Below are positions 1-36,628 of a stretch of 64,000 nucleotides of DNA, in pieces. The position numbers and the translations under genes are program-made. The DNA is from Penicillus capitatus. Lineage: Eukaryota > Plantae > Chlorophyta. The stretch covers positions 1,394,477 to 1,458,476 of the forward strand of contig OZ287699.1 in the NCBI GenBank assembly GCA_965649825.1, given 5' to 3'. The notes below the pieces were generated by a model. The model was not told where the DNA came from. It did not search any database and saw nothing but the letters and a program-made list of their open reading frames with translations. Every line of letters starts with the position of its first letter. The first letter of the stretch is position 1.

Positions 1-1304
1 ATAACAAAGACCCAGGTGTTGGTCCGCCGCGGTGAATGACGCCATCCGACAAACTAGAGAACAAGACTGAATCTCCCGTCGCCGCATCTGCATTGATCAT
101 CTGAGCCAAGTGCATCAAGTCCTGACTCAAACTGGCAGATGTCGAGTGATGATGCATGCCTTGCTGAAAAGCCCCGGCAGAAAGACTTTGACGTGGACTG
201 ATGTAGTCACTGAAACTGCGGGGCGTTTGTGAAAGCTGCTGAGCATGTAGTCCATGAAAATATGTCAAGAGTTGTTCAGAGCCGCCAATTGGCTCCGCCG
301 CCATGCGAGTAAATGGATCAAATGGTGTATGTGTCGTCGTTGCTGACCATGGTGTCGTTGGGGTCAGTGATCCAAGCGGAGAGACATCGCCAAATGGCGT
401 CGTAGGAGTTGCGGATGTTGTGTTCGTCAACGCACTTAGTGCCGCCTGCAGCTCTGCAAAGTTGTTTGCAGAGTAGCGATTTTCGTCTGGTTGACGCGGG
501 GTCCCCATCGAGTTGGAAAAGGCAGCGAGCCGTTGACGAGGAGAAGGAACTGGGCCACCACCATTTTGCAAAGACGAGAGAGCTGCAAGGGCAGCTGGAT
601 CTCCATAGCTTGATGTGTGGCTGAGTGTCGCGGACTGCGTTCTCGGTCGTGTTGGCCAAGGGGAGGCGGGTATTGGATATCCTCGATCGCAAGATTCCGA
701 AGCCGATAGGACGCTCTCTAGTCTGTGCTTGTTTCGGGCAGTTGTGGCAGAATCGATGAAAGGGCCCTGTTTGGTGAACACGACAGGTGGGGCCGTGCGA
801 ATCTCTTCAGGGCGATGCGCAAAGAAGCAGATCTTTCTGCTGCATCCAGGTCCTTGTTTGCAGTACTCTGTCTTGTACCTGCACCAAAAACACGTGTCGG
901 CAGGAGGGACTCAAAAATGAATGGGCAACACCTGGCAGGATGCAGCCAATATTCAAAGTCGTTATGAGCGTATTTACACGAATCTCCACGTGGACAAGGA
1001 TTTCCCTAAACGGCGACGACATTAGAACGATGGAAGTTAGGTAGATGCGGACGGACTCCTTTGCTCTCTGGACAGGGAATCGGTTTGTATAGATGCGGTT
1101 GTCTCCGTCGCGCGCTTTCTCCTGAATGCGCGTAGGGGCAACTTGTCCAGTCGTGTGCGTACTTTGTCGGGCAGGTCGTTATCTACACATCATTCATGGC
1201 GGTAGTTGCAGCTCGGGTTTAAAATAGGGGAAGCGGACCTTGTATATGTACATATAAAAATTCTCTACGTCTGCTGCGCTTTTTTGCGAAGAGTTTTCCC
1301 GCAT
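1..1304 (-). CDS. Plant-type tandem CCCH zinc-finger protein (RR-TZF family); 3' end runs off the window
   Basis: Manual splicing over three GT-AG introns gives MRENSSQ...[34 protein letters not shown] (CHCH + RR motif), [20 protein letters not shown] (C-x8-C-x5-C-x3-H) and [28 protein letters not shown] (C-x5-C-x4-C-x3-H). The frame stays open to position 1. Confidence 0.9.
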
Positions 1305-2019
1305 TTTGCCACGGAGAGATTCTTGCCAATAAAATGCCTTTCAACGCTGAGCACTCGTCAAGAGGACGTAAAGGGCAGAAAAATTAAGCCCGCAATACGC
1401 TAACAAGAGAGCCTGTTCGAAGGTAAAGCAAGATGAGGAGACAAAACAATAAATGGCGGGCGTGCGCAAGAAGCTGGTCGTCACCGCGAACTATGAAGTT
1501 CTGTTTAAATCATAACATTTTCGCCCACATGCGCTATGACGTCAGCCTTGCCTCACTGGCAGTTGTACTCCAACAATCGGTACGGTTGTTAATGGGCATT
1601 GGGGAGGAGACCTTGGACTCCTAGCATCCCAACAACAGGTTTGATGGTTGGCGATGGGGACTTTGGACTTCAGGCATACCAACAACAGGATCGGTCGTTC
1701 GCGTGGGAGGCATTTTGGACACAAGCATATGAGACCTTTAAATGAGAGATGTCAACAGATGATCAAGAAAATCATCAACACACAAGCTTATAGCAAATTA
1801 AACTTGCATTCGTCGCTTGTAATAAGGAAGCACAGTTCAGTCAGTGTTGTTTCCGTTGCAAAAAGGGGCAGCTAGTAGAGATTAAAGAGAACAATGATTC
1901 CTATCTCCTGCTTGAACGGTTAGTATGATAGTCACAGTGAAAACCACCCATGATCCACAACGTTGTTCGCAATGTTTCGTTTGACTTTCTCTGCATAGAT
2001 GCTAGATATGTTCAAAAAC

Positions 2020-4304
2020 TTAGCGATAAAGAGATTTGCACTCAGGAACTTCTTTCTTGGTGCAGGACTTCTCTCCAGCGACCTTCTTGCAGACCTGCTT
2101 CTGTTCGCACTTCTCCCCTGCTTTGCAGTAGACAGATCCGCATGCGACTGGCTTAGCATCGTCGCATTTCTGTTGTTTCACGTATTTGCATTCCGGCTTC
2201 TTGTCGACGCACTTCTGCTGCTTCACGATCTTGCATTCCTTGACACTCACAATCGTGCAGACAGGCTTCTCAACTTCGTGGCAGACAGGCTTCTCGACAG
2301 GTTTGCACACTTTCTCCTTGTTCTTTTCGCATTTGTCGACATAGACCGTCACGCACTTCTTCTCTTCTTTCTCGGTGCAGTCTTTGACATACTCTGTCTT
2401 GCACTCTTTCTTGTATACGGTATCACACTTATCGACGTATGTCTTTTCACAGACCTTCTTGTCGACGTACACGCACACATCTTCGTACTGAGGGACGCAT
2501 TCTTTCTTGTCGACGTAGGTGCAGTGTGGCTTGCTCTCGTATCTGCATTCTTCTTTTTGCACGGTCACACAAACGTTATCCTTGTAGGGAGTGCAGTGCT
2601 CTTTGTCGACGTAGTCACATTTTTCCACGTAGATGTCTTTGCAGACCTGCTTGTCGACGTAGTCACATTTTGGCTTGCTGATGTACTCGCATTTGTCGAC
2701 GTAAATCGTCTCACACTTCGGCTTCTTGACGTCTTCGCATTTGGGCACCTTCACCTTCTCACACTTTTTCTCGACTGGAGGGCAATACTCGTCGTCGACG
2801 TAGGTGCACTTGGGCGTGGAGACGGTCTTGCACTTCGGCACCGTCTTGTATTCACACTTATCCTTGTACACGGTCTCGCACTTCTGCTCGTCCTTGTAGT
2901 CGCATTTGTCGACGTACACCGTCGTGCATTTCTTCTCCTTGACGTCGTAGCACTCCTTTGTGGTGACTGGTTTGCATTCTTTGACGTCTTTGTACTCGCA
3001 CTTCTTCTCTTCCTTGTTCTTGAAGTCGAAGAAGCCGTTGAGGCGACGGCGACCTCCTCCACTGCAGACCTCTTTCTTCACGTAAGCACAGACTTCCTTG
3101 GTAACGTCCTTGCAGACGTTTCTAGGAACGTCTTCGCATTTCTGCTGAGCGACTTTCTCGCAGATCGGCTTCTTGACGTAGTCGCATTTCTGCTCAGGCA
3201 CCTTTTCGCAGACGTGCTCCTTGACATCCTCGCATTTCTCTTCGCTGACCATCTTGCACTCCTTTCGGGGCTTCTTTACGCAGGGAGGCTTGTAGTCTTT
3301 GCAGACGTCTTTGTATTCATCGGTGCAGACCTTTTCATAGTCGTCCACACATTTCTGTTCAGGGACCTTTTTGCAGACCTTCTCCTTCTCGTAATCACAC
3401 TTCTTCTCCTTAACGATTTCGCATTTTTTCTCGGGCACTTTTTTGCAAACCTTCTCCTTCTTGTTCTCGCACTTTTGCTTCGTGACTACTTTGCACTCCT
3501 CGCGAGGGACAGTCTTGCAGACTTTCTCTTTTTTGGATACGCACTCTTTACGAGGCTTCATCTCACACTTATCGTCGACTTTCTTCTTCTTGCAGACCTT
3601 CTCAGGTACGTTCTTGCATTCGTCCTTGGGGACCTTTATGCATTTCTGCTCAGGAACGTCGTGGCACTTCTCCACTGGTTTGTCCGTGCAGACAGGCTTC
3701 TTCACGTAGTCGCACTTTTCCTCAGGCACCTTTTTGCAGACGTCCTTGTCGGCGTAATAGCAGTCTTCGGTTTTCTTGGTCTCGCATTTCTGCTCCTTCA
3801 CGGTTTTGCACTCTTTGCGTGGGACGTATTTGCACTCGTTGACGTCGACTGTCTTGCAATCCTTGACAGGGTCAGGGCAGACCTTCACGTCAACTTCGTA
3901 GCAATGTTTTCCATATCCATCGCCGGCGACGCACAGCGGAACGGTTTCACAATGATCTTTCGTTTCGCCTGGAACGCAAATGTCTTTCCAAACGGCGGCG
4001 CAGACATGGCCATGAGGACATTTCCCACAACCTGAAAAGACGGTTAGCCGACTCCATGCTGTGTGCATTGGAACTTACCCGTGGCTTGTTTGAAGTCCAC
4101 GATTTTGGTTTTATCCCCGAACGCGGTCGCTGAGGATGCCTAAACAACACAGCATTGGTCAACAGGAATGGCTTCACGGTCGTTTCCGAATTTCAAGAAA
4201 TAGAAAGAGCGCATGGAAAAAGGCCGCCTACGCGGGTCCGGCGTTCGAAGGCTTACCGCGAGGAGGACGAGCACTCCCAGAAACAGGTTGCGCTGAATCT
4301 TCAT
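2020..4304 (-). CDS. Secreted Cys/Lys-rich octapeptide-repeat protein, copy 1 (3 coding exons)
   Basis: ATG at 4304 gives signal-like MKIQRNLFLGVLVLLA, then two GT-AG introns and a ~670-aa exon with Cys every 8 residues (CKTVPREE CKVVTKQK ...). TAA at 2020-2022. Confidence 0.9.
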
Positions 4305-4842
4305 ATTTTCACCTACACCCACACCATCATGTTATCCGTCGCGTTGACCAGAAGACGGCGCGAGGGTCAGTCAATACCCTATCGACGTGTTTTTCGACGT
4401 CGCGGTGAAATCTGTCTATGTCTTCGTTTGTGAATCACGGTAGACGAGAAATAAAACAAAACGTTGCGAAAAGCTCGCCCCTCTCCGACGAGTTAGCAAA
4501 ACAGATGTCGCCGGATTCAAACTCGAATCGAAGCAAAACAAACAGCGACGAGCCGTTAAATACCGCTCGCTCGACGGCGACAACAACGAGTCCGAGTGCT
4601 GTGCATGTGCCCGAATCGACAGATGGCGACGCGGACAACCCTCGAAGTCGCATCGCCAGACCGTTCGTAACACTGCCCCGTGAAGTGCGACGCGTTTGAA
4701 CAACGCGTTTGAGATGTCTTACCGTGGTCGATGAATCGGACCTCCTCGGCAAAAGACGGATACGGTAACAATCGCTTCACAAAGAGAAAATGATGTTCGC
4801 TGTTCAAAACAGACAAAACTGGATAATGGCGTCGCGCGCGGG

Positions 4843-4850
4843 TTTATATA
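4843..4850 (-). promoter_or_regulatory. Probable TATA box (TATATAAA) for Cys/Lys repeat gene copy 1
   Basis: TATATAAA on the minus strand, upstream of a CG|GTAAG donor (4722) and a TGTAG acceptor (4313) lying 8 nt before the ATG. Confidence 0.5.
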
Positions 4851-5653
4851 GGAGATTTTCAATCCGCCAGCGCGAAGCTCCTTAGTGCGAAGTTCCTGTT
4901 TCCTGTGAGTTCCCACACGTTTTCCTTAGGAGTGGATGACTCATATCATTGACTTCGCAGTGAAACAGGTTATGACGAGAAGCGATGCGCGAACATGGAT
5001 GCGCTTGCGTCAGGTTGACGTGACGTTCAACATGCTCACCTGTCTTTTCATCTGCCTCCAGCCCGCGGCTGTCTTTATTCCAAGGCAACGTTGTCCTTCC
5101 TTTAAGAAATGGGTCGCTTATCCACTTTTCTTGTCCAGCGTCACTGGGATATCTTCAAAGTCGTTTTTCCGTCCTCTATCGGCTTTGGATTCCTCTACAC
5201 GATGCAGTACGGCACCTCTCCATTGACCGACGCGAAGAACTATCTCTCTGGTACGGATGTCGCGCCGAGACAAAATGTTTGGAGTGAGGAGCACCGTATG
5301 TCTGCAGGGTCGACTTCTCCAACGGATGTGTTGACGGTGCGTTTCTCTTCGAGCAGCCTCGGCGGCTCACGTTGACTTGACACGAGTCTACCCGTCGACC
5401 AAAAATCCACGTAGAATCCGTGCCAGGGAGAGTGTATTTTGAGCAAGTCGTCGCTGTGGGGAGTGCAATGCAACGCGTTGTGACCGACCTGAGTGTCTAG
5501 CTGTTTTTTCTATGGCATCCCTTTTTTCTGCTGTAAGCAGTTGTATAGACTCTTGGAAGTCAAACATGGGATGTCTGAGAACCCCTTTGTCTTTTCATGA
5601 TCCGTCTGAGAGGCTCGTGCGACGATGTGTGGCGTCAAGACACCGAGCATTAT

Positions 5654-5677
5654 CGTTCGTTCGTTCGTTCGTTCGTT
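5654..5677. repeat. (CGTT)6 microsatellite upstream of RPL34
   Basis: Six perfect tandem CGTT units read directly. Confidence 0.9.
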
Positions 5678-5707
5678 CGCGTTACATTCGCCGCCGAAGA
5701 TCGAAGA

Positions 5708-6227
5708 ATGGTTCAGCGCGTTACCTATCGACGGAGGCACCCTTACAAGACGCGATCGAATCGCGTTAAGATCATACGTCTCCCAGGTCGCCGATTCAAA
5801 TCGATGAGGGCGTTTCATACGTCCTCGATTGCCAGGTGGAAAGTTGGCTGTTCATTACTTGCGCAAAAAAGCAAAGAATGCTCACTGTCGTATTTCTGGA
5901 GCCCGTCTCCATGGACTGAAAGCCCTGAGGCCTGCAGAAATGCATCGGGCAAAAACGAAAGGCAAGTGGAAGACACCCAAACGGAAGTATGGTGGCAATC
6001 TATCCCACACCGTCGTTAAAGAAAGGTTTCCTACACACTGCCCTCTCATGGACACATCTCTTGTTTGTCATCATCTAGAATCGTCCGTGCTTTTCTCTTA
6101 GAAGAGAGCAAGATCGTCAGAAGAGTGCGTTCTAAATCTTAAATAATGTGTGATGATGAACGTCCATTGTTTTCGCTTCTAGGTTCTCAAATTGCAAAGA
6201 GCAAAGGAGAAGAAATCCGCAAGATGA
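5708..6227 (+). CDS. RPL34: 60S ribosomal protein L34 (4 exons)
   Basis: MVQRVTYRRRHPYKTRSNRVKIIRLPG/GKLAVHYLRKK...YGGNLSHTVVKER/IVRAFLLEESKIVRR/VLKLQRAKEKKSAR*; three GT-AG introns. Confidence 0.97.
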
Positions 6228-6647
6228 GGCGTACCGCTGCTACCTGTGTTTATCTGGGGCGGGCGCTTCCCAAAACTATTGCGCAGATGCTTACAGTGTA
6301 TCTGTGAATGTTTAAGAACTTCAGGAAAGGCGCGTCGCTCTCATGAGAGAAAACAAAAAGTGTCATGCAAGACAGTGCCGCTTCATCTCTTACATTCAGG
6401 CTGGTGCACTGCCGAAGAAATGGGCATCTCAGCGCCATCTAATTACTTAGATGCAAAGCTGAAGGTACAGACACTCATGTTATTTAATTCTAAGAGGCAG
6501 ATTCATTAAACAAGTACAGAGAAGGTAAAAAATGGCGGCAGCTGGACATATTTGATATCATGGAAGAACGACGCTCGAAGAAAAATCACAGAAGTCCATA
6601 AGATGAATACACAACAACAGGAACGAAGAATGTCTGTCATCTTATTT

Positions 6648-9618
6648 TTACGGCAGTGTCATTGTTGGTGCTGTGTCTACGTCGTCGGGTTCTTCGAGGG
6701 TTGGGGCGGCGGTTGGCACCGGGGAATGCGGTGGTGGATGTTCATGTTTGAGCATCGAGTTCAGCTCATCGATGATGTAATCCAACGTCGGTCGCCAGTC
6801 TGGGAAGTCATTCCAGCACATGCAAGCCAATCGAGAATACGCCTAGAAAACAGACAGACAGAGAGATCATTGATGGTGGAGGAGGTGATGTGACGGAGAG
6901 GGTGTACTTGAGGACAGTCATCTGTGAAAACGGGTCTCCACGAACCCATGGTAAGCCGAGAACTGACTTTTGGAGCATCTTTGATCGCATCTTGTATCAA
7001 TTCTCCAGTAAAGAGTTCCCACAACAAAATACCAAAAGAGTAAATGTCAGACGCGGGCAGAATCTTCCCTCGCATTGCCACCTCGGGCGAAACATATCCC
7101 CCAGTTCCCTACAAGCGTCATGATCTCATCAAAAGTGCACGTGTGAGAATGCATAACTGACTGACCATACGCATTCCGTCAACATGTGACTGCTCGCTCT
7201 CCATCTTGATGCTCAGACCGAAATCTGCGATCTTGGCAATGAACCCACGAGAATCGACAAACGGCTTGTTCTGCAGAAGGACGTTGTGTGGTTTGAGATC
7301 TCCGTGGATGATATTGTTTTCATGCAAACAACACAGTCCACGGGCAATGTCGAGTGCGGTCAGAATCACAGCTTCGAAATCAGGTTGTGAAGGATCATCG
7401 GGGCTTCGAAACCATCCGAGTGCGATGGCCGATACGAGAGACCCTCGATCACAGTACTCCATAATGATCCGCACTTCCAGATCGTTTTTGTATTGGGACT
7501 TCATGAAATTCTTGGATGCATTTGTCATGTTAAAACGCTCAATGGACATCCACTTCAGCTTGTTCTGGCTGTCTTCAACCGAAAACTTCTCGGCTTCTTT
7601 CTCAAGATCGCTCGCTTCTCGAATCTCACACGTATACGTCGACACAATGTTAGGGTGTGCTAAGCAACCTGCACGACACGTTGGGATAGATACATGGTAG
7701 AGGGGAGTGGCTACCTGACAGTGCGGCCTCCATAATGGCCATACGTGCTTGCTTCTCCTCTTGTCTGAGATTGGCATGCAGGGGGACCACTTTGAGGGCA
7801 ACGGGTGTTCCTTGCCATCTCGCTTTCCACACCTTGCCAAATCCGCCTTTACCTGAATCCATCAGCAAGACATTCGCATCAGGGCAATTCGGAAAGGGGA
7901 TGGGTAAACAGACCCAGACGTTCTTCGATTTCGAGGACGCGGTTTTTCCTTCCGACTTTTGACGTCCAGAAAGACCGGTGCAGATGTTTCGATAGATCAA
8001 TGAGCTGCTCGCCAAATCCGTCACGCGTGGCCGTAACATCACGCTTAGCAGGCGGTTCTCTGGTTTGTTTAAGTGTGCCATCAAAAGTGCAACTGAAATT
8101 GATGCTCTCTGTCGGCAGAGACCTATCAGTGCAGTGCGGGTGCATTCCTTGATGAGGAGGAGGCGGTGGCGCCTAGACACCACACATGCATTCCAACGAA
8201 ACCAACAAGAGAGCAAGCAGCTCACTCTTGGCGTATTTTGTGCAGCAGAATCGGAAGGGTAAAAATGTTTGTAGATGAACGGGAAGTTGTCTTCTATGTA
8301 ATCTGCAATGAAATCTTGAACTTCTCCGTTTCGATAGAGAAAAACTCCGATAATGACCACAATAATCAGGAATCCACCAATGATTGTTGCCGGAAGCCAG
8401 TGAACAAGTTTAACACTGCCTTGGTCATTCTGCTCACTCTTTATCTCGGCTGCCTCATCGTTATTCTTCGGAATCCCTCTATCCCCGACAAGGCGCTCTA
8501 CAAACTCTGGGTCATGTGTCAGGTCGCCATAACCTGTCAACTTGATCTTCGAGATCTGTAAAGAATCTGCTTCTCTGCCTTCGATGACGAGATCGACATA
8601 AGTCGGAAGACAGTCGAGGATTTCTGTGAAATTGATTTTCACTTTGTAACGTCTCCAGCAGTTAGACTGGTAAGAGTCGTCCTTGAGCTCTGGCTGAAGA
8701 TGTTCCGGTTTGCATTGGGGTTCGACGTATGGCGTGATCCCAAACACGGAATTGTTATGCTCACATTGATACAGTGTCACGTCGATCGCAGCGATACCGC
8801 GAGGCATCGAATACGTGATGATCCCCTTGTTCGGTGAGCGACGGCGAAATCGATGATCATCACCGTTGAAATTGGCGACGGCATTGGCCGACTCCAGCAT
8901 GATGTTTTCGCTTGCCATAAAAACCATTGTGAAATCTCGAGCTGAGTCATCGAATTCATTGGACTTGGCATCGGACACTGCAGCAATGCAATCATCGGAG
9001 CTTATCATGCTCAGACATTCAGGAATGACACAGGACTCGAGAACACTTTCTTCCAGAACAACACGACCGACCTGCAACCCCCAACCCGGAAATGCATTTT
9101 GCGAAGCGTTTCCTCGAAACCAAAGTTCTAAAACCTGCAACAGATCGTTCATGACGCATCGTTCAACGATTTTGCCTTGCCTTGGGACAATCACGGATCT
9201 CATGAGTCAGTTCGACTTCGAATCTGATAAAACGCGTTGTCGTGTTGGGTGTGTTCTCCCACTCTTTCGAATACTCTTCGAGATTGGAGGGCTCCAGAAC
9301 GAAGGCTTGGGCTAATTGAGTGTCCGTCGTGTCGCCTGTTAGGATTTCTAATCGCCACTCGATTCCCAAGTAAGCATATCCAGAAATAGTGGCGTGTGAG
9401 AAGCCCGTTTCTGAGACGTACCGAACGAATCCGTCGTCCGTCACATTTCGCCGAAATCTGAATGCGTCAGCGATGGGTTCTACAATACTGAAATCCAGTG
9501 TCAGATTTTCCGTGTGTTTGCGCAAGCCCTCCGGCATGAGAGAATCGCACTCGTCCACATAACAGCGAACAGCGGGAGTGGTTAAAAACAAAGATGCCAG
9601 AAGCAAAAGATAAAACAT
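6648..9618 (-). CDS. Single-pass receptor-like protein kinase (TKL/MAP3K-like chlorophyte type) with tandem extracellular domains
   Basis: Signal peptide MFYLLLLASLFLTTPAVRC; TM WLPATIIGGFLIIVVIIGVFLY; kinase motifs GKGGFG, VALK, HPNIV, HGDLKPHNVLL, DFG, GTGGYVSPE, SDIYSFGILLWE. The first intron is GC-AG (9135-9180). Confidence 0.9.
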
Positions 9619-10105
9619 GATGGCCGGAATCGGAATCCTTTAAACGCAGAGACTCCCGTGTTGCCAACGGTTTTGCCAAACGACGCGTTGCGGACGAACC
9701 GAGCTAGAAGCACAAAGGAAGAGGTATCATTTAGAGGGTTAATGATATCTATACCTCGCTAACCGTACATACCCCATCAATGTGTACGATCGCACTCCAT
9801 TTCTACGGTTCAAAATACGCTGGCCTCGTTTGGAGTACCATACCATTTGTTTGTGCATAGAATTCCTGCCCGAAGCTACATTCGCCATCGTATTCGTTCC
9901 CTTTCGCTCGCCGCTATCGAAGCTGAGTGGTTCAGGCGCCGTCAGGTGTCCTTCCGTCGACAGTCGTGACGTTCGTTCGGGGAATGGGTTGAAGGAAGCA
10001 TCAAGCGCGCTTCGTTTCGCTGTCGACAACTCTTTCCTTTCTGCCTACAACCTAAGTCTCATTGACAAAGACCCCTTCAAACAAACGTACTGTCTTGCGA
10101 GAGAA

Positions 10106-11389
10106 ATGCCGGAAGAAGATAAAGAACCGACTGACGATCCACCACGACCACCCCCAAAACCTGTTAAACAGTCATCTAAGCACGTGCGCGTCGGACCTGT
10201 CGAATTGGAAGACCCCACTGTCGTCGAATGGGATCCCGAAGAACGTTTCCATCGTTACGCAGAAGAATTGGCAACGGGACGATATAAGACTGTCTATCGA
10301 GCCTATGACACAGAGAATGGTATCGATGTAGCCTGGTGCAAAGTACGAACGGCAGAGGGCGATCCATCGCCCAATGATGCATTGACTCAAATCTATAAGG
10401 AAATGAAAAAAGGACTGACTCTAGACCATCCAAGCATTGTCCGATGCTTTGCCTGTTGGTTCGATCGCAACAAGGGCTGCATCAATCTCATCACAGAGCT
10501 CTTTACTTCTGGAACATTGCGTGCCTATCGTCAGGCTTACAGCAATGTGGATCTGAATGTGTATCGTAAGTATGTGCGTCAGCTCCTACAAGGATTGGAG
10601 TATCTGCACGCCCAGACGCCGCCAATTGTTCATGCCGATTTGAAGTTGGACAAGATCTATGTCAATGGCTTCAATGCGGAAGTGAAGATTGGTGATTTGG
10701 GATTGACAACGCTGATAACCAAGCACTACGACTCTTCGAAGCCACCCGTCGTGGACTCTCCCAAGGAAGATATGCTTGCATTGGGCTTATGTGTTTATGA
10801 ACTGCTGACTGGAATTCCACCGGATCGTACCAACGCTCCCAGTTCCTTTCGTGAGAATTTGCCTCTGTCGAAGATCATGGACAAAGATGCTCGAGATTTC
10901 ATTATTCAATGCTTGGATACGGACAATCCCCTTACTGCTCATGCTCTCTTGGAACACCAATTTCTCAAATCTCAAACGACAGAATTCAAAGTGAAGAATG
11001 GAGGTGAATGGGATCTTAAACGGGTAGAATCGAGGAACCAAAGTATCGAAACCAAACTGAGGGGTGAAGACTGGAACTTTGCATTCCAGGTCTGTTCCGT
11101 CTACATGGCGGCTTGCGTTCTGAGATTCTCTGCCTAGGGCTATGAATCTGACGACGATGAGACATCGCTGCACATTCGGTTAACCATGTCGAACGAGACC
11201 GAGACGGAACACGTCACGATTCTGGATTTCGACTACAATTTAGAAACAGACACACCAGACAGCGTGGGATGCGATATAGCGGATTCCTTTCAGTTAAGCA
11301 GCACAGATCGAGAACTGTGTACGGCTGCGCTGAAAGAATGGCTCGCAGTGATGTCTGCATCCAAAAGAGACGGATCACCCCCACCCTAG
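10106..11389 (+). CDS. WNK-like kinase, probable pseudokinase (2 exons)
   Basis: LATGRYKTVYRAYD, GIDVAWC, ITELFTSGTLR and EVKIGDLGL are WNK hallmarks. Exon 2 encodes a WNK CCT-like segment (LDFDYNLETDTPDSV). Start placed at MPEEDKE (10106) rather than the GTG start of the track ORF. Confidence 0.85.
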
Positions 11390-17121: not shown

Positions 17122-18225
17122 CTAATACTGTTCCGATATGAAGTTATAGCCTAAGAGCTCGAAATCCGTCCGGAAATGCTTTTCTACTTCTTGCACACAT
17201 TCTGGGTTTTCTGTATACAGTGACACAGCATAATGATCGCGGTGATTTGCATTTCTGGTACGCAGATGGTCTGGTATCTTGAGATCTGGTAAGCTTGACG
17301 GTTTTCTCTTGTTGATCTCGTCCAGCACAGTCTTTATGTCTCTGTGAAGGAATTCTGTTTCTCCGACAAAATCAACAGCAGGTAATCCTTCCTGTGTGAA
17401 AAAGCAACTGGATTGCTCCATGATGTGATGAACGTGGTGGTTAAACCAGTTCAGTCTGGTCTCATTGAAGACCTTAAAGGCTTGAAGAAATGGCTCGTGA
17501 CAAGCTTCTTCGAAAGGGATTCGTTCCTCATTTACTGTCAGGCCTTTGATGTATGTGTAACTGCTGCCGTATCTCGAATAGGGATTTCGAATGAATCCAA
17601 ACACGAAGTAGTCATCCCAGTACTGCTTGGCTTCCTCTAGACTGGTTGTCTTGTTCTCGTACCAACGCTCAGAACAAAACTCCATGCTGATGTTCTTGGG
17701 TGTCAACCAGTGGTCGCCGCAGATCCACCCAAGCGGTTCGCGGATAGTCGTCCCGCCCACCTTCTTTCCCTTGATCCAGATGAACCGGTAGGCGTGATTG
17801 ATGTGCACCAAACATCCTGGAAGCTGCATTGGCGGCTGAGCGATCTCGCAGAACGCCCCAGTGTGCTTTATTCGAGATACTGCCCAATTCAGCGTCTTAC
17901 TCCGGCGCAGTTTCTTGAATTCAGGCCTCCAGTTTAAGGGATTCAGCATGCCAGTTTTGTTTTGGAAGCCTCTAACTGTGGGTCGCATAGACAGAGCTTC
18001 TTCTATTGTTTTATTGCTATATTCGACTTCTGACGAAGCAGATTTCTGCAAATGGATACTGCAATTGATATTGTTCCAGACTACCCAGCTCGATGTGTTC
18101 AAGACCCGATGGAGCGAAGTCGAGGCGAGGAACTGAAGCAGAATGTATAGCAACGACAGAAAGACAGCGAAAATACCCAATCTAGTCGTCCACGGATAAG
18201 ACAAACGTGTGTTTCGGAGGCCCAT
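17122..18225 (-). CDS. Golgi type II membrane sulfotransferase (Sulfotransfer_2-like), paralog 1, intronless
   Basis: N-terminal TM, 5'-PSB-like WIKGKKVGGTT, 3'-PB FGFIRNPYSRYGSSY, DFVGETE, DFELLGY. First ATG at 18225. Confidence 0.88.
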   Translation of the reverse strand: MGLRNTRLSYPWTTRLGIFAVFLSLLYILLQFLASTSLHRVLNTSSWVVWNNINCSIHLQKSASSEVEYSNKTIEEALSMRPTVRGFQNKTGMLNPLNWRPEFKKLRRSKTLNWAVSRIKHTGAFCEIAQPPMQLPGCLVHINHAYRFIWIKGKKVGGTTIREPLGWICGDHWLTPKNISMEFCSERWYENKTTSLEEAKQYWDDYFVFGFIRNPYSRYGSSYTYIKGLTVNEERIPFEEACHEPFLQAFKVFNETRLNWFNHHVHHIMEQSSCFFTQEGLPAVDFVGETEFLHRDIKTVLDEINKRKPSSLPDLKIPDHLRTRNANHRDHYAVSLYTENPECVQEVEKHFRTDFELLGYNFISEQY

Positions 18226-19459
18226 ATGTGAAAGACGCGCAAATGAAGTCAGCAAGACGGTATTCTGTTCATCGTTGTCATTTTGTAGCACATCAAATGG
18301 AGGTTAGAGATTGTCATCAAATTCTCAGGAAAACACTTTTCGGCTAAAAACAATGCATGACGCACAAACGACCCCATTCCGAAAGAAACAATAACCGTTC
18401 GCTTAAGGTTGCCATCCTAAATCACAATGCAATAGATCATTGTACAATAGGATCGGAGGAGGACTGAATGCCAAAGTTCATCGTCGATTCTTCTCGACTA
18501 AATGCGTAAAAACAATGTTAAAGGGAGAAGAAACCAGATTGGTATGAGCTTTTTGAAGATGGCGTTGTGCACTTGTGGCTGCTGATCGTGTAAGAGGCAC
18601 CTGAGAAACCTTCAGGGCAAATCTGACAGCGTCATTTTCTCGTTGCCAGACGAAGCCACATCTGAAGGGTTATGTCATTTCCGCCGCTCCCCTCCACCTG
18701 TCCTTTCTCGGCACTTTCAACGAAGTCTCCCCCTATCATGGCGATTTGAAGAACGCGCTAATAAATCTAATGATGTCATTCTGCTGTCAGAAGAACAGGG
18801 CCGTCACGATGTGACGTGTCTTGTTATCCAAGGGGTTTGTCTCCGAACGGGGCGCTTACACGACGTATCATGTCACCTGTGACATATAAAGACATGAACG
18901 TAGACCCGTGTGAGCCTTTTGCTCTGTCATACGTGAAGCTTTTCGCTAACATCTGAAATGGACGAGGTCAGTGACTTCGTTACATATGCACAGAAGCAGC
19001 TCCATAAGCGCGACACCGCGCGTAAACTACGTCAAGTTGGAGCACCTGACCTGATACAAACGGACCAGTCGCAAATTGACCCCGACTCACGCAATTCATA
19101 TGTCATCTGCATGATTGGCATCGGAATGAGGCGCGTCTCCGTCGTGATTTGGCTCAAACTGCGTTTTTTCTGAGCACACTTGTGCGGTCGGCCACGAACG
19201 TTTTTCTCCGGCGTTGTTCCCCTGCACGAGACCGGAGATCTGCCGTGAATTCTACGATTCCAATATCGCTAAGATTTTGATTGGCGATGTGGCTGCCTTG
19301 TTATCAATGAGTCATCTGGTGGAAAGGGTGCCTGTTGTCACGTCACATGGGCGCATTGGCTTCAAAGAGGGTTGACGGGTGGACGTAAACAGTTTCCGGC
19401 CCGCGGCCCGGACACGTCGCAGCTTCGCGACGTGACGTCCGTCCGTGGGCGATCAGGGG

Positions 19460-24731: not shown

Positions 24732-25895
24732 TCAGACGTTAGGCAGCGATTCCGATCGATCGGACACTCTCCAGGTGACATGCTCATAACCCAGTCGTTC
24801 AAAGTCTATCCAGAAGTGCTTCTCCACTTGCCGTAGACAGGCTGGGTGCTGCATGTATAGTGGAACCGCATAGTCTTGGCGCAGGTTTGTATTTTTGGAC
24901 TTCAGATGCTCTGGCATTTGCAGATCTGGTACCTCTGGATTTTTTCTCTTGTTGATCTCGTCCAGTATCGTCTGCAAATCTTCAGAAAGTCGTTCCGTTT
25001 CGCCTATGAAGTCCACAGCCGGCACACCTTCTCGCGTGAACAGACAGCTGCTCTGCTCCATGATGTGATGAACGTTATGGATAAAACCCCATTTGACTCT
25101 TGGGCGAAAGGCTTGAAGGAATGGTTGCCGACAAGCCTGTCCAAAAGGAATACGGCCCGCTTGTCTCGAAAGCTTCTTGATGTATGTGTAACTGCTGCCG
25201 TATCTCGAATAGGGATTTCGAATGAAGCCAAACACGAAGTAGTCATCCCAGTACTGCTTTGCTTCCTCTAGACTGGTTGTCTTGTTCTTATGCCAGCGCT
25301 CAGAACAGAACTCCATGCTGATGTTCTTGGGTGTCAACCAGTGGTCGCCACAGATCCACCCAAGCGGTTCGCGGATAGTCGTCCCGCCCACCTTCTTTCC
25401 CTTGATCCAGATGAACCGGTAGGCGTGATTGATGTGCACCAAACATCCTGGAAGCTGCATTGGCGGCTGAGCGATCTCGCAGAATAATCCAGTGTGCTTT
25501 ATCCGAGATACTGCCCAATTCAGCGTCTTATTCTCACGCAGTTTCTTGAATTCAGGCCTCCAGTTTAAGGGATTCAGCATGCCAGTTTTGTTTTGGAAGC
25601 CTCTAAGTGTGGGTCGCATAGACAGAGCTTCTTCGACGACGTCAATGTGGCCAAGGTCGGATAGCGACACTTTGTGCGTGCTGTTGCAGCCCACTTCCCT
25701 AAGAACTGGTTTCCGCACTGAAATGCGAACATTCGTTGTCCTGAGAAGGCTCCATTTCTTCGTGTTTTCTGTCTCAGGTTGTAACAGTGAAGGCACCACC
25801 GAAACGAAATGGAACGAGCCATAGAGCAGTATGAACAAGACAAGGACTGTCAATGCCCCAACACAATGACGTTTGCGATAGTTACAGAACTGCAT
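24732..25895 (-). CDS. Golgi sulfotransferase (Sulfotransfer_2-like), paralog 2, intronless
   Basis: TM LTVLVLFILLYG, KGKKVGGTT, FIRNPYSRYGSSY, DFIGETE, DFERLGY. First ATG at 25895. Confidence 0.88.
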   Translation of the reverse strand: MQFCNYRKRHCVGALTVLVLFILLYGSFHFVSVVPSLLQPETENTKKWSLLRTTNVRISVRKPVLREVGCNSTHKVSLSDLGHIDVVEEALSMRPTLRGFQNKTGMLNPLNWRPEFKKLRENKTLNWAVSRIKHTGLFCEIAQPPMQLPGCLVHINHAYRFIWIKGKKVGGTTIREPLGWICGDHWLTPKNISMEFCSERWHKNKTTSLEEAKQYWDDYFVFGFIRNPYSRYGSSYTYIKKLSRQAGRIPFGQACRQPFLQAFRPRVKWGFIHNVHHIMEQSSCLFTREGVPAVDFIGETERLSEDLQTILDEINKRKNPEVPDLQMPEHLKSKNTNLRQDYAVPLYMQHPACLRQVEKHFWIDFERLGYEHVTWRVSDRSESLPNV

Positions 25896-26209
25896 CCTTG
25901 CTTTGAAGCCCCTCCGGCAGTTTGACTTCAAACTGCTCTGTTGTGACAGCGACGTCGAAAGCGACGTTTCAACGTCGCGCGCAAAATAAAGTCTGCGTTA
26001 CACACAGTGACGTCCAGCCCTCTCTGGAGTAAGTGCACGCGTGAAAGATTGATTATTCCAGTATACAAATGTGAAAGCGGGCATCTAAAAACTGACGGAA
26101 TTTGTGTTCCCCATCTGTGTTCAAACACCGTCTGGATGAAGTGAACATGTCGACCAATTGTCATCTTGTCTCTTGTCTCGTCACCATTCCCTCCTCAGTC
26201 AAATTCGGT

Positions 26210-27409
26210 TTACTCAAAAGACGCGGTTATTCGATTGTATCCCAATTTTTGAAAATCCGACCAATAATTCCTCTCTATCCGTTCCAGACAAGTACTGTTG
26301 CGCAGAAACAGGTCTGTGATGTAATGATCTCCATGGGCATTGATTCTTGGAAGGACCTGTTCACGAATAACGAGCTTTGGCAGATGTGAAGGCTTTCTTC
26401 GATTGAGTTCATCCAGAACGGATTGCAGATCTTCCTGCAAATTTTCCAGCTCTCCAACGAAGTCAACGGCCACTCGACCGTCGTCTGTAAAGAGACAGCG
26501 ACTCTGTTCCATGGCATGACGGAGATGATGCGTCACGGCCCCTGACCAACAGCATCCAAGTATGCTGCATGTTTTTGCCATCAGAAAAGGGGAGTCACAG
26601 AGCTTTCCGAAATTCACCAGACGCGGACAGTCTCCCATCAGTGTATCCACGTATGCATAGCTGCTGGCAAATCGGGCGTAGGGATTGCGTACGAAAGAAA
26701 ACACAAAATACTCATTCCAGTACTGTTGCGCCAGTTCCGGCGAAATGTCTTCGTCGGCATGGAGCTCTTCGGCACATAGCGTTCGATTTGCCGTTTCCGG
26801 AACCAACCAGTCATCATTGCAGATCCATCCAAGCGGCTCTCGGATTGCAGTGCTGCCCACTCTCGTGCCTTTGATCCAGATATATCGATAGTGATGATTG
26901 ATGACGACATCGCAGCCAGGGTAATGCAAAGAAGGTTGCCTTTCCAGGCAACCCACTCGCTTTTTATGGGGATACGAAAACCAAACAGACATCTCCTCAT
27001 TCCTTCTCTTTTTATGTTCCGGCCTCCACTGAAGGGGGGACAGTATCACGTCACTCTTGTTATGAAATCCTGCAATAGCCGCTCGGCTTTCGATGGCCCT
27101 GGCAATAACACTCTGCTGGCGAAGCCATGCCTTGTCAGCGCGAAATGCGTCGTCGGAGCAGTCAAACACTTCAGGCGGAACAAATGTGGACACCTTGCGC
27201 TGATGACCGTTGTCAAAGACCGAAGGCGTCTCACGACTCTCGAGTAGACGCACCTGAGCAGTGACGGTCCTGACTTCACTGTACGATGTTTGTAACTGAG
27301 CTTCGTAGTGAGCGCTCTGACGGACGACGTTGTACAAGGCAATGATTCCGATCAGGAACACGATTGCCAAACAAAAACGGCTCGACTCGGCATTCCGCTT
27401 GCTACGCAT
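26210..27409 (-). CDS. Golgi sulfotransferase (Sulfotransfer_2-like), paralog 3, intronless
   Basis: TM FCLAIVFLIGIIALY, WIKGTRVGSTA, FVRNPYARFASSY, DFVGELE, DFQKLGY. First ATG at 27409. Confidence 0.88.
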   Translation of the reverse strand: MRSKRNAESSRFCLAIVFLIGIIALYNVVRQSAHYEAQLQTSYSEVRTVTAQVRLLESRETPSVFDNGHQRKVSTFVPPEVFDCSDDAFRADKAWLRQQSVIARAIESRAAIAGFHNKSDVILSPLQWRPEHKKRRNEEMSVWFSYPHKKRVGCLERQPSLHYPGCDVVINHHYRYIWIKGTRVGSTAIREPLGWICNDDWLVPETANRTLCAEELHADEDISPELAQQYWNEYFVFSFVRNPYARFASSYAYVDTLMGDCPRLVNFGKLCDSPFLMAKTCSILGCCWSGAVTHHLRHAMEQSRCLFTDDGRVAVDFVGELENLQEDLQSVLDELNRRKPSHLPKLVIREQVLPRINAHGDHYITDLFLRNSTCLERIERNYWSDFQKLGYNRITASFE

Positions 27410-27449
27410 TTTCTCAAATTCGAGACAGATGATGGACAAGTGTAGCGGT

Positions 27450-27940
27450 TCATCGATCGACAGTAGAAGATAATCCATTTCCCTCAACGCCACTCGGTCC
27501 CTTCGTTTTTTGTGTTCGGACTATGCGATTGAGACTCTTGATTTTCTGTTCGATATCTCGGTTTCGCCCGCCATCGCCTCCGACGCACTCTGCAGCACGT
27601 TTGTACCAACGCAGTGCTTCGTCATAGAGCTCCTGGGCCTCGTAGATGCTCGCTTTGCGAAAGTATCCCTTTTCCCAGTCAGGACGCATAGAAATGACAC
27701 GGTCGGCGTCGCTTTGAGCCTTTGTCATTTTGGACAGCTTTATCAGCGCCGCACAACGATTGCTACACCACACATTCTTCATGGCGTGACGCGCGGACGG
27801 CGTAACCTGAAGAGCAGCACATTCTCTGGGTCTTCTTTAATGGCCTTTGTATAGAGACCCGCCGCTTTCAGGAAGTTCCCTTTCTTAAACTCAACGTTGC
27901 CTTCTTTTTTCAGTTGTTCTGCTTTTTGAGGGTCCGACAT
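27450..27940 (-). CDS. Small TPR protein (STI1/HOP TPR1-like), 2 exons
   Basis: MSDPQKAEQLKKEGNVEFKKGNFLKAAGLYTKAIKEDPEN...S/NRCAALIKL...PDWEKGYFRKA: three TPR motifs. Confidence 0.9.
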
Positions 27941-33194: not shown

Positions 33195-34043
33195 CCATGT
33201 CACGCTCGTTCTGTAGCATGTTTGTTCAAGGAACCTTGCCCACGGAACTCTCCTGTATTATCAAGGTGTCTGTCTGTCCACACTGCAGGCACCGCGTGTC
33301 TAAAAGAGGCATCGAATGTAGATGCCACCTACTCTGGACGGTAAACTGTATTGATATTTGACTTCTACCCATCTCTGCCGAGTTCTATTTTTTATCTACT
33401 GTGGAAGGTGTGGACAGTCTGTGTTCTTTTTTCTGTATTAAAAGATTGACTCTGGCTCTGACGTCGTTCGCGACGCTGTAAATTCTCGCCGTTCAGAAAA
33501 GTTCGCGTTGACGGCGCGCAGCTTCATTCCAGGTCCAAGAGACGGCGAACCGCGTGTGTCATGTCAAACGGCGTTTTCCCAGAACGTGAACTATCCTTGA
33601 CTTCTTATCTTTTCTCGCATTCTCGATGCTGGAAATGGAGTCAGGCGCGTGCTGTCCGCGACTCTTCGGTGTAATCTCTCAGTAATGTTGACTCATACCA
33701 TCCTCTGCGTCATGATCTTCGCATGCATGCTAACACGTCAGCTTCTCATCGGAAGGCAAAAATCACTGTCATGACGTGGACTTTCTGACTCCGCCGAATA
33801 TTTAAACCCTGCCGCCAGCGAATCGGCACGACTTTGAATTTGCGTTTGTTTTTCTTGACTTTTCGAACTTGCTTTACGTTCGTCCGCACGACGTAAAGCT
33901 ACGTTTGGTGGTGTGTCCATCTTACCTCAGATACTCTAACCCTCGTGAATACGATTGAAGACGAGAAACGCTAACTTGCGACCGAAGACCAGCGAAACGC
34001 TGCTATCTCTCTAAATCTCGACATTGCGCACCAGTTGTGAACG

Positions 34044-36184
34044 ATGAAAGTCCAATACATCTTCTCTTTGGGCGTCGTGATTCTTCTCTCGGTAAGTCCC
34101 AGCGCACACCGTTGACTGTCGTTTGCGCGTTCGGTGCTGTCGATTCGCATGCGGAAGTCGCCGTGAAGTTACTCGGGTGTTGAACTGTGTTTGTTTCTGC
34201 AGGCCACGTCCGCGTCCGCGTTCGGCTACAAGAAGGACAAAATCGAAAACTTTAAACCCGCGACCGGTATGCGGCTCTTCATGTGCTACTACGAGGTTTG
34301 CTAACCGTCTTTTCAGGTTGTGGAGAATGTCCTCACGGTCAAGTCTGCGCCGCCGTGTGGAAAGACATTTGCGTTCCAGGCGAAACGAAGGACGACTGCA
34401 AGACCGCCCCGCTGTGCGTCGCCGGCGACGGATATGGAAAACATTGCCACGAAGTTGACGTGAAGGTCTGCCCTGACCCTGTCAAGGATTGCAAGACAGT
34501 CGACGTCAACGAGTGCAAAAACGTCCCGCGCAAAGAGTGCAAAAACGTGAAGGAGCAGAAATGCGAGACCAAGAAAACCGAAGACTGCTACTACGCCGAC
34601 AAGGACGTCTGCAAAAAGGTGCCTGAGGAAAAGTGCGACTACGTGAAGAAGCCTGTCTGCACGGACAAACCAGTGGAGAAGTGCCACGACGTTCCTGAGC
34701 AAAAATGCATAAAGGTCCCCAAGGACGAATGCAAGAACGTACCTGAGAAGGTCTGCAAGAAGAAGAAAGTCGACGATAAGTGTGAGGTCAAGCCTCGTAA
34801 AGAGTGCGTATCCAAAAAAGAGAAAGTCTGCAAGACTGTCCCTCGTAAGGAGTGCAAAGCAGTCACGAAGCAAAAGTGCGAGAACAAGAAGGAGAAGGTT
34901 TGCAAAAAGGTCCCTGAACAGAAATGTGTGGACGACTATGAAAAGGTCTGCACCGATGAATACAAAGACGTCTGCAAAGACTACAAGCCTCCATGCGTAA
35001 AGAAACAACGAAAGGAGTGCAAAAACGTCAACGAAGAGAAATGCGAGGATGTCAAGGAGCACGTCTGCGAAAAGGTACCTGAGGAGAAGTGCGATATCAT
35101 CAAGAAGCCTATTTGCGAGAAAGTCGCTCAACAGAAATGCGAAGACGTTCCTAAGAAAGTCTGCAAGGACGTTACCAAGGAAGTCTGTGCCTACGTGAAG
35201 AAAGAAGTCTGCGGTGATGGAGGTCATCGTCGCCTCAACGGCTTCTTCGACTTCAAGAACAAGGATGAGAAGAAGTGTGAGTACAAAGACGTCAAAGAAT
35301 GCAAACCATCGACCACAAAGGAGTGCTACGACGTCAAGGAGAAGAAATGCACGACGGTGTACGTCGACAAATGCGACTACAAGGACGAGAAGAAGTGCGA
35401 GACCGTGTACAAGGATAAGTGTGAGTACAAGACGGTGCCGAAGTGCAAGAATGTCTCCACGCCCAAGTGCACCTACGTCGACGACGAATATTGTCCTCCA
35501 GTCGAGAAAAAGTGTGAGAAAGTGAAAGTGCCCAAGTGCGAAGACGTCAAGAAACCAAAATGCGAGACGGTTTACGCCGACAAGTGCGAGTACGTCGACA
35601 AAGAGCACTGCACTCCCTACAAGGAGAACGTTTGCGAGACCGTGCAAAAGGAAGAATGCAGATACGAGAGCAAGCCACACTGCACCTACGTCGACAAGAA
35701 AGAATGCGTCCCTCAGTACGAAGATGTGTGTGACTACGTCGACAAGAAGGTCTGTGAAAAGACATACGTCGATAAGTGTGATACCGTATACAAGAAAGAG
35801 TGCAAGACAGAGTATGTCAAAGACTGCACCGAGAAAGAAGAGAAGAAGTGCGTGACAATCTATGTCGACAAATGCGAAAAGAACAAGGAGAAAGTGTGCA
35901 AACCTGTCGAGAAGCCTGTTTGCCACGAAGTTGAGAAGCCTGTCTGTACGATCGTGGATCGCAAGGAATGCAAAATCGTGAAGCAGGAGAAGTGCGTCGA
36001 CAAGAAGCCGGAATGCAAATACGTGAAACAACAGAAATGCGACGATGCTAAGCCAGTCGCATGCGGATCTGTCTACTGCAAAGCAGGGGAGAAGTGCGAA
36101 CAGAAGCAGGTCTGTAAGAAGGTCGCTGGAGAGAAGTCCTGCACCAAGAAAGAAGTTCCTGAGTGCAAATCTCTCTACAACTGA
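34044..36184 (+). CDS. Secreted Cys/Lys-rich octapeptide-repeat protein, copy 2 (3 exons)
   Basis: ATG 34044 MKVQYIFSLGVVILLS, same exon structure as copy 1, near-identical repeat exon; TGA at 36182-36184. Confidence 0.9.
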
Positions 36185-36628
36185 AAATCGCGATAACACA
36201 TATCCATTTCTTTCAACGAGAGTTCATACGTCGAACGATTTGATTGTATAACCATATGATTTGTGTGACGAGTTTTTTGTTTGAGTGAATACTATCTCAT
36301 TCTTGATTCTCGTCCAAGTCTCCAATAGTGTTAGGATATATGACACCTCTTTCGTTACCTTGACTTGCCTCTACACAATTGTTATCCGTGCTTGTGAACA
36401 TTGACTGCATTATGGGACATGTGCCCCAGATATGTGTGGAGGTCATAGTCTCGGTTGTAAACAAGGTGTGATCCAGCTGTTGCACGATCGAACTGTCCCA
36501 TCGCCCGACGATCGAAACAAACATCTAACAACACTTGCTCATTTGAAGTGACAGCGCCGACACTTGACGATTATTTTTGGCGCGGTTTTGGTTTCGCGCT
36601 GCCTCTATTACGTCTTTTCCATTCTCAA

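Follow-up and report, generated by a model that had tools for sequence, protein, structure and literature searches.

What kind of protein can be built from a chain in which cysteine recurs at nearly every eighth residue? This question is raised by a locus of the green alga Penicillus capitatus, which we analyzed in a window of 64,000 nucleotides (contig OZ287699.1, positions 1,394,477 to 1,458,476 of the forward strand), the window being that whole stretch of DNA, whose own numbering is used below unless another contig is named. The Cys ladder was first seen as a 682-aa open reading frame (ORF) at 2020-4068 on the minus strand, and its gene, copy A, has three exons. It was compared with three algal homologs, namely a second copy in the same window (copy B), an ortholog of copy B on a metagenome contig (L001) and a homolog on a further metagenome contig (L002). 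Our analyses make it reasonably probable that the single chain is a giant cystine-ladder beta-hairpin, whose proline-type and tyrosine-type arms are zipped together. The parts of copy A are as follows.

4304-4257 / 4139-4079 / 4031-2020, minus strand: copy A, whole gene, three exons with GT..AG introns, 706 aa.
4556..4562, minus strand: TATTTAA box of copy A, 258 nt 5' of the ATG, read directly.
4257..4304, minus strand: exon 1, MKIQRNLFLGVLVLLA, start of the putative signal peptide; ATG at 4304, GTAAGC donor at 4256.
4079..4139, minus strand: exon 2, rest of the putative signal peptide and a short N-terminal segment (ASSATAFGDKTKIVDFKQAT-G); TTTAG acceptor, GTAAGT donor.
2020..4031, minus strand: exon 3, the full Cys ladder, both caps and the stop codon, based on the ORF and on the ratio of nonsynonymous to synonymous substitution rates (dN/dS).
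3901..4029, minus strand: N-cap, Cys0-Cys6, gaps 3,6,8,9,6,10 (42 residues), kept in copy B, L001 and L002.
3064..3900, minus strand: N-arm, Cys7-Cys41, proline-type units C-x-x-V-P-x-x-K, from unit and gap analysis.
3388..3459, minus strand: 24-aa segment found only in copy A, Cys25-27, from alignment.
3001..3063, minus strand: central loop SGGGRRRLNGFFDFKNKEEKK, Cys41 to Cys42, the proposed hairpin tip, at the exact center of the Cys-gap palindrome.
2167..3000, minus strand: C-arm, Cys42-Cys76, tyrosine-type, C-x-T-V-Y-x-D-K alternating with C-x-Y-x-x-x-x-x, from unit analysis.
2614..2685, minus strand: 24-aa segment found only in copy A, Cys56-58, from alignment.
2023..2166, minus strand: C-cap, Cys77-Cys83, gaps 8,5,6,6,9,8 (42 residues), from gap analysis.

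The 84 Cys of copy A define 83 Cys-Cys intervals, of which 68 are exactly eight residues long, with a further four of seven and three of nine, in keeping with the original prediction of about 75 C-x7 units, whereas shuffled sequences had a mean of 4.07 eight-residue intervals and a maximum of 14 in 10,000 shuffles. As had also been described, the 682-aa ORF is dominated by K, E, D and V and nearly free of Leu (K 153, V 98, C 84, E 80, D 53, Q 17, L only 4). Copy A, whose pI is 8.6, has 37 Tyr, mostly on one face of the modeled ribbon discussed below. The first half follows the consensus C-x-x-V-P-x-x-K, and the Tyr-rich second half has a 16-residue super-period, with unit similarities of 0.81, 0.57 and 0.84 at shifts of 2, 4 and 6, respectively, versus 0.24, 0.26 and 0.07 at shifts of 1, 3 and 5; the proposed change from CxxVPxxK units to alternating Tyr-type units is thus seen in both the unit consensus and the super-period. 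The sole CxxC is at the start of the N-cap, the other Cys gaps are of 5-10 residues, mostly 8, and CxC and CC are absent. The caps are as foreseen, with CPHGHVC inside the N-cap and CKAGEKC inside the C-cap, where CKAGEKCEQKQVC is invariant among all four algal homologs. The N-terminus of copy A (MKIQRNLFLGVLVLLAASSATA, then FG), judged by eye, is signal-peptide-like and fits the signal peptide that had been proposed, which is regarded here as putative. The exon junctions of copy A are kept in copy B and L001.

AlphaFold2 folded a 184-aa fragment of the C-arm into hairpins, with strands 2-49 paired to 57-104 and 107-141 paired to 149-183 (mean predicted local distance difference test score, pLDDT, of 65.5; 78 residues at 70-90), and it was these hairpins that led us to examine how Cys are spaced along the full-length chain. 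The Cys-gap series of copy A was found to be a near-perfect palindrome about a central 22-residue gap, with 42+42 Cys on its two sides, compared to 39+39 in both copy B and the L001 ortholog and 30+30 in L002. The two arms are 321/320 aa long in copy A, 297/296 in copy B and the ortholog, and 224/225 in L002. The seven-residue units are mirrored as well (7 with 75 and 31 with 51 in copy A, 27 with 31 in L002), and the irregular N-cap and C-cap have 42 residues each. When the non-cap gaps of copy A were permuted with the caps held fixed, the palindrome was matched in 0 of 100,000 trials. The central element, which comprises 22, 22, 20 and 7 residues in copy A, copy B, the ortholog and L002, respectively, is Gly-rich (SGGG..., YGKWG) and without the unit grammar, and the center of L002 is a tight CKYGKWGC.

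Insertions and deletions (indels) in either arm have counterparts in the opposite arm, and all but one of these pairs are at exact mirror positions. The two 24-aa segments of copy A, defined as specific to it by comparison with copy B, the L001 ortholog and L002, carry Cys25-27 in one case and Cys56-58 in the other, and these mirror each other exactly (n and 83-n); L002 is without Cys34-41 and Cys42-49, the single block that makes up the tips of the two arms. Mirror partnerships are kept at 39/39 positions between copies A and B, at 39/39 between copy A and the ortholog, and at 26/29 between copy A and L002. A parallel pairing of the arms was ruled out by the indel positions. We also considered the A-specific segments as recent tandem duplications, and this was rejected as their best internal DNA match was just 49/72.

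When the arms are set in mirror register as an antiparallel ribbon, the ratio of opposite to like charges across the ribbon is 46:18 in copy A, 41:17 in copy B, 41:13 in the ortholog and 37:16 in L002, whereas the ratio falls to ~25:26 once the register is shifted by one to six units. Permutation of the partner units reached the observed charge excess only 0, 9, 1 and 34 times per 20,000 for copy A, copy B, the ortholog and L002, respectively, and the alternative geometries (parallel arms, stacked successive units, a meander) gave charge counts that were near neutral on average. These data bear directly on the possibility that the disulfides are local, with neighboring units stacked in a beta-solenoid with coils of 16 or 24 residues or folded as a meander of short strands. 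The 16-residue super-period of the C-half would suit such an arrangement, as would the A-specific indels of 24 aa, or three units, and the beetle antifreeze protein is a precedent for regular Cys in a beta-helix. However, local pairing does not predict the equal Cys halves of the four homologs, the mirrored seven-residue units, the mirrored indels or the mirror charges. In addition, the charge counts for stacking and meander in copy A are near neutral (61:65, 61:71 and 62:43), and indels of three units would break a pairwise pattern between neighbors. We regard local disulfides as very unlikely.

The placement of residues within the eight-residue units of copy A is also highly regular. Pro is at odd positions (3, 5 or 7) in 28 of 29 cases, Tyr is at positions 3 and 5, Val/Ile/Leu are at positions 4, 8, 6 and 2, with 46 at position 4, and Gly is absent from every unit. 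The commonest pairs across the arms are Pro5-Tyr5, Val4-Val6 and Lys3-Asp7. In an antiparallel sheet, cross-strand Cys-Cys bridges favor non-hydrogen-bonded sites, and the residues that alternate with them along the strand in the same manner are likewise non-hydrogen-bonded and tolerate Pro. The odd-position pattern of Pro and Cys fits an antiparallel ribbon because such sites are non-hydrogen-bonded.

Together, the spacing, charge, indel and parity data and the AlphaFold2 fragment are the basis from which we infer a disulfide map and a rod shape for the single-chain hairpin. The secreted chain would fold back at the central loop, so that the N-arm (~320 residues) would run antiparallel to the C-arm (~320 residues) and Cys n would bond Cys 83-n in the opposite arm, for a total of about 42 rungs. 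These would comprise ~35 regular rungs at eight-residue steps and a 14-Cys knot of both caps where the chain ends meet, and the variable loop would form the tip of the rod. Odd positions would place the cystines, Tyr and Pro on one face, at the non-hydrogen-bonded sites, and even positions would place a stripe of Val/Ile on the opposite, hydrophobic face, which could drive side-by-side packing. The product would be a stiff, highly charged rod of ~90 nm, as estimated from 279 ladder residues per arm at ~0.33 nm each. The original prediction of a disulfide-laddered extended beta fibre thus stands with regard to the beta ladder, but not if its rungs are taken to join neighboring units, as the spacing, charges and indels all point to long-range rungs between the N-half and the C-half.

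Several observations weigh against the single-chain hairpin. The caps are not internally mirror images of one another, and a 9-versus-8 length mismatch at unit 19 is kept in all of the homologs. L002 has a loss of one unit per arm that is ~4 units off the exact mirror position, the placement of a one-unit gap within a repeat array being ambiguous. The charge test is not decisive alone, since a parallel register of +2 units gives 37:16 in copy B. The fragment model is of moderate confidence, and the alignment behind it consisted mostly of the protein's own repeat windows and distant matches; MAFFT, applied to this pseudo-alignment of self-windows, re-aligned overlapping windows to themselves with partial success. 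AlphaFold2 prediction of the full exon-3 protein from a two-row alignment had a pLDDT of 27.9 and was unusable. A Foldseek search of the fragment model against the PDB found no analogue (best E = 1.3), its insignificant matches being the long hairpins of pore-forming toxins, and an isolated two-stranded ribbon of such length is, to our knowledge, without precedent.

It should also be considered that the same antiparallel ladder could form between chains, as a homodimer or as a head-to-tail disulfide polymer, that is, a covalent fiber. An antiparallel dimer predicts the palindrome, the mirrored indels and the mirror charges equally well, a polymer would suit wall or plug material, and relatives with inserts of 84 to ~500 aa (P0017, P0156 and P0008, described below) could swap arms between chains. 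The center of the molecule is where the two arrangements part. The central element behaves as a loop, given its 22/22/20/7 residues, its Gly-rich composition and its lack of unit grammar; L002 loses exactly the tip of both arms, short loops favor intrachain closure, and AlphaFold2 folds single chains into hairpins. Because the center behaves like a loop, a ladder between chains is less likely than the single-chain hairpin, and we consider it unlikely overall. The central loops of copies A and B (3001-3063, minus strand, and 35213-35275, plus strand) have GGG-RRR-L and FFDF(K), whereas L002 has just YGKWG. From these sequences, the loop could act as a sticky tip or be processed at a dibasic site, in which case the ladder would consist of two chains.

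The duplication noted in the original prediction is borne out, copy B being 94% identical to copy A across exon 3, and a tblastn search of the window for a third ladder copy found none. The call of a TATA-driven gene is also supported, as both copies have a TATTTAA box ~250 nt 5' of the ATG. The parts of copy B, and the frames that are open opposite the ladder, are as follows.

34044-34091 / 34203-34266 / 34317-36184, plus strand: copy B, whole gene, 659 aa, inverted relative to copy A and 30 kb off.
33799..33806, plus strand: TATA-type box of copy B, TATTTAAA, 245 nt 5' of the ATG, kept in L001.
34044..34091, plus strand: copy B exon 1, putative signal peptide.
34203..34266, plus strand: copy B exon 2.
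34317..36184, plus strand: copy B exon 3, ladder with 39+39 Cys, loop at 35213-35275.
1999..4035, plus strand: antisense open frame of copy A, 678 aa, not a gene (dN/dS 1.3-1.8; no homologs).
34313..36199, minus strand: antisense open frame of copy B, 628 aa, not a gene, based on dN/dS.
L001 12422-14134, minus strand: antisense open frame of the L001 ortholog, 570 aa, annotated as a gene there.

L001, a metagenome contig of 960 kb, was reached through the HPPD (4-hydroxyphenylpyruvate dioxygenase) gene of the window at 31878-33194, to which the HPPD of L001 is 91% identical. Directly downstream of this L001 gene is a 657-aa ortholog of copy B that has two introns in common with it; copy B and the ortholog are syntenic, each just 3' of HPPD, and their flanks are also common to both. 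L002, which was found in a scan of JGI metagenome contigs, is a contig of 1,887 nt that consists of a 5' untranslated region (UTR), an uninterrupted 500-aa homolog and a 3' UTR. Its protein has 45% identity, with the signal peptide, caps and order of parts as in the ladder gene. L002 is colinear with spliced copy A, its joins match the proposed splice junctions exactly, and it looks like a transcript. The splicing of copy A is confirmed because the intronless L002 joins at the proposed junctions. Among the two copies and the L001 ortholog, dN/dS is 0.13-0.16 in the Cys frame versus 1.3-1.8 in the antisense frame. Therefore, given this ratio, the syntenic ortholog and the transcript-like homolog, the ladder gene is real and under purifying selection.

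The antisense strand of exon 3 is wholly open and its product is rich in L, F, D, V and A. We rejected the antisense ORFs as genes because of their dN/dS above 1, and a protein database search found no homologs of the antisense-frame product. The gene caller applied to L001 chose the antisense frame over the ladder gene. No close relative of the ladder was found among the 5.8 billion proteins searched, and such antisense mis-calls are probably the explanation. With the antisense strand fully open, and called as a gene in a related assembly, the ladder family is expected to be under-represented in protein databases.

High identity between copies A and B (87-99%) is limited to the stretch that runs from ~20 nt within intron 2 through the stop codon, and elsewhere (exons 1-2, the other intron sequence and the flanks) their identity is 35-59%. 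The synonymous divergence (dS) between copies A and B is 0.18, well below the 0.56 between either copy and the L001 ortholog. Since the identity is confined to exon 3 and the dS of the copies is so low, this pattern suggests that there has been gene conversion restricted to exon 3. As a side observation, the promoter of copy B (33700-33800) and that of the ortholog (L001 11810-11900) have in common the ACGT-core motifs CACGTCAGC and TGACGTGG, which sit immediately 5' of the TATA box, and the promoter of copy A is without obvious likeness to them.

Distant relatives of the ladder occur in plankton animals and bacteria. An exhaustive HMMER search, run against 1.84 billion cluster representatives, found 261 matches at E <= 1e-3, none of which was below 1e-30. 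The relatives examined were the 161 top-ranked matches from the protein database search and the HMMER search; their identity to the algal protein is 29-36%, with E no better than 1e-28. Four perfect tandem repeats (P0155, P0173, P0182 and P0223) were set aside as unrelated. The commonest Cys gap is 8 in nearly all of the 161, and 64 of them have exact gap palindromes versus 7 after shuffling, the criterion being at least six gaps, including one other than 8. Examples are P0140, with gaps of 12, 8x13, 6,8,7,8,6, 8x13, 13, and P0156, with gaps of 12, 8x7, 6,8,8, 113, 8,8,6, 8x7, 12. The palindrome of L003 is about a 58-residue gap, and P0008 has its tyrosine-type array on the N-terminal side and, across ~500 residues, a proline-type array on the C-terminal side that mirrors it. 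In the 2,615 eight-residue units of the relatives, 1399 Pro fall at odd positions and 15 at even ones, and 1,200 of the units have Val at position 4. Their charge pairing is 316:146 in register versus 173-221:142-182 off register.

The C-x7 arrays of these proteins (for example, P0001, P0008, P0006, P0140, P0145, P0176 and L003) are like the algal ladder in their C-x-x-V-P/Y-x-x-x units, palindromes, Pro- and Tyr-type arms and putative signal peptide. They differ from it in their low identity, in having fewer rungs (7-21 mirrored gaps) and in often being fused to enzymes or having large tip inserts. The likeness of the algal and distant arrays may reflect common descent or convergence. P0006 is from the copepod Tigriopus, and other relatives are from marine metatranscriptomes. 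Some relatives are bacterial by context, among them P0176 (L004 6001-10029), which has DUF11-type repeats and, as its neighbors, an ECF sigma factor and an S8 peptidase, and P0145 (on a contig of JGI 3300047160), which lies beside a DUF4142 protein. A search of bacterial and archaeal genomes with P0140 as query found no relative. The gene upstream of P0145 has a 476-aa product, the same length as P0153, a relative of P0145, and is possibly a tandem paralog. Several relatives carry a fused enzyme, a flavin amine oxidase or a reprolysin-type metalloprotease, and inserts of 84 to ~500 residues lie between the arrays of P0017, P0156 and P0008, as if the ladder were a stalk presenting something. 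Within one set of animal-like ladders (P0002, P0010, P0004, P0009, P0008, P0156 and P0017), some have an enzyme fusion and others have tip inserts.

The original prediction recognized no named domain in the protein, and this remains the case as no match was found in Pfam (both copies, E <= 1), NCBIfam or a phmmer search of the PDB (E <= 1). The arrays of the distant relatives had no usable Pfam or NCBIfam assignment either; two bacterial ones, P0145 and P0140, have weak Cornifin matches (E = 2.7e-5 and 0.0037, respectively) that are below the curated threshold. The Cornifin/SPRR family (PF02389) resembles the ladder in its octapeptide repeats with Cys, Pro, Lys and Val, and its members are heavily cross-linked structural precursors. 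However, SPRRs are cytosolic, Gln/Pro-rich and cross-linked by transglutaminase, with neither a disulfide ladder nor a signal peptide. The algal protein was rejected as a Cornifin/SPRR since it has no Pfam match at E <= 1, a signal-peptide-like N-terminus and just 17 Gln.

Other comparisons were with periodic or rod-like proteins. The antifreeze protein of Tenebrio molitor is also an all-beta rod with a short tandem repeat and strictly periodic Cys, but it has 12-residue coils, local disulfides across the coil and a Thr ice-binding face. A beta-helix of this beetle type was rejected for the algal ladder, whose period is 8 or 16, which has no TCT motif and for which long-range mirror pairing is favored. 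The surface antigens of Paramecium and Tetrahymena are likewise large surface or secreted proteins with marked Cys periodicity; however, they have CxxC periods of ~75 aa, a GPI anchor and a Pfam family of their own, whereas the algal ladder has no Pfam match. The G5-E repeats of SasG/Aap of staphylococci form long, thin, single-layer beta rods that are coreless and serve as extracellular stalks. SasG/Aap differ from the ladder in consisting of tandem three-stranded modules with local topology and no disulfides.

The spacing palindrome, charge pairing, Pro parity and AlphaFold2 fragment are all consistent with a predicted place in the class of cystine-ladder hairpins. The established members of this class, theta-defensins, tachyplesin, protegrin and gomesin, are cationic antiparallel hairpins with disulfides at non-hydrogen-bonded sites. 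These peptides have 17-18 residues with 2-3 rungs at each second residue pair, whereas the algal ladder has ~640 residues with ~42 rungs every 8, two distinct arms and caps, and there is no sequence kinship between them. The principle is thus already known in small cystine-ladder hairpin peptides of one-thirtieth of the size. No description of the architecture was found in our searches of the literature on octapeptide and Cys-periodic repeats, cystine or disulfide ladders and wound-plug proteins of the Bryopsidales. We give somewhat less than an even chance to the broader proposal that this is the longest known example (42 rungs, ~320-residue arms) of an undescribed architecture, a single-chain, two-stranded beta-ribbon with nested disulfides that serves as a rigid rod or stalk module across bacteria, animals and green algae and has been hidden in part by antisense calls. 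It is only tentatively that we suggest a new fold class for the giant ladder hairpin. If true, this would be a new way of building protein rods, with length set by eight-residue units added equally to both arms, and a natural, genetically tunable strut or spacer of tens of nm with covalent rungs. It would bear on fold classification, on biomaterials and on oxidative folding, as 42 nested disulfides must find their register, and it would provide a name and a testable structure for several hundred unannotated proteins of bacteria, crustacean-like plankton and algae.

With regard to function, our best guess, by analogy with rod-like stalk proteins and from the exposed Lys/Tyr, is a structural role in the extracellular matrix, either in the wall or in material released upon wounding: the ladder could be a strut that bears tension or keeps spacing, and its exposed Lys and Tyr could serve as sites of cross-linking. 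For seaweed biology, it would be a candidate constituent, seemingly an abundant one, of the wall or wound matrix in algae with giant cells. A narrower possibility is that the protein is stored and, once released on injury, is the main substrate that oxytoxin 2 or an oxidase would cross-link into the wound plug. It is well established that activated caulerpenyne cross-links proteins. The siphonous host on which this idea had been made conditional is plausible, as the HPPD adjoining copy B is nearest to those of Caulerpa and Bryopsis (a single marker, ranked by identity without a phylogeny); its named matches are Caulerpa lentillifera (70%; EukProt EP00210), Bryopsis sp. KO-2023 (63%) and Chlamydomonas-type algae (62-65%). 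From these matches, the host would be a green alga with a probable kinship to the siphonous Bryopsidales. The 153 Lys, the 37 Tyr mostly on one face, a putative signal peptide that would make the protein secreted or lumenal, and the two gene copies, which would allow a high dosage, are also what such a substrate might have. Three carbohydrate sulfotransferase genes lie between the copies, and sulfated polysaccharides have been discussed with respect to the wound plugs of Caulerpa (PMC7554865). However, if the ladder model holds, the Cys would be locked in disulfides and not available as nucleophiles, and the presence of the same module in bacteria and animals that have no such plug points to a generic structural role. 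In addition, no homolog was seen among the Caulerpa and Bryopsis proteins searched, where mis-called antisense frames could hide one. A role as the main plug substrate is quite unlikely in our estimation.

The abundance of Cys and Lys and the pI of 8.6 could alternatively be read as those of a metallothionein-like store, in which reduced Cys bind metal, or of a giant cationic beta-hairpin antimicrobial, small cystine-braced cationic hairpins being known antimicrobials. The putative signal peptide implies oxidative folding, though, and the Cys count is even in all of the homologs. The charges are mostly paired across the arms so that there is no cationic face. A metallothionein-type binder was rejected as there is no clustering of CxC, CC or CxxC and a putative signal peptide is present. 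We consider both roles extremely unlikely.

The other features of the locus are as follows.

17122-18291, 24732-25931 and 26210-27493, minus strand: three carbohydrate sulfotransferase paralogs (Pfam Sulfotransfer_2), between the ladder copies.
7118-9203, minus strand: kinase-type gene, whose ORFs by eye are like a split receptor-like kinase, with a membrane-span-like stretch and then HGDLKPHNVLL.
9782-11137, plus strand: protein kinase gene with a clear Pfam Pkinase match.

The sulfotransferase trio between the ladder genes may concern sulfated polysaccharides of the wall or plug, or its position may be a coincidence. Both kinase-type genes adjoin copy A; a Pfam search of the 7650-9203 part of the first gave no match. 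Rfam matched no family in the window. On L001, retroelement genes (aspartic protease, reverse transcriptase and integrase) are located 5' of HPPD at 1250-8287, and none of the ORFs of at least 150 aa at ~29.7-31.9 kb, 5' of the HPPD of the window, is retroelement-like, that interval having had no systematic search. The window also encodes a histone deacetylase and a TCP-1 chaperonin, as well as an ABC-transporter-like ORF that was assigned only via the Pfam match of the syntenic L001 gene.

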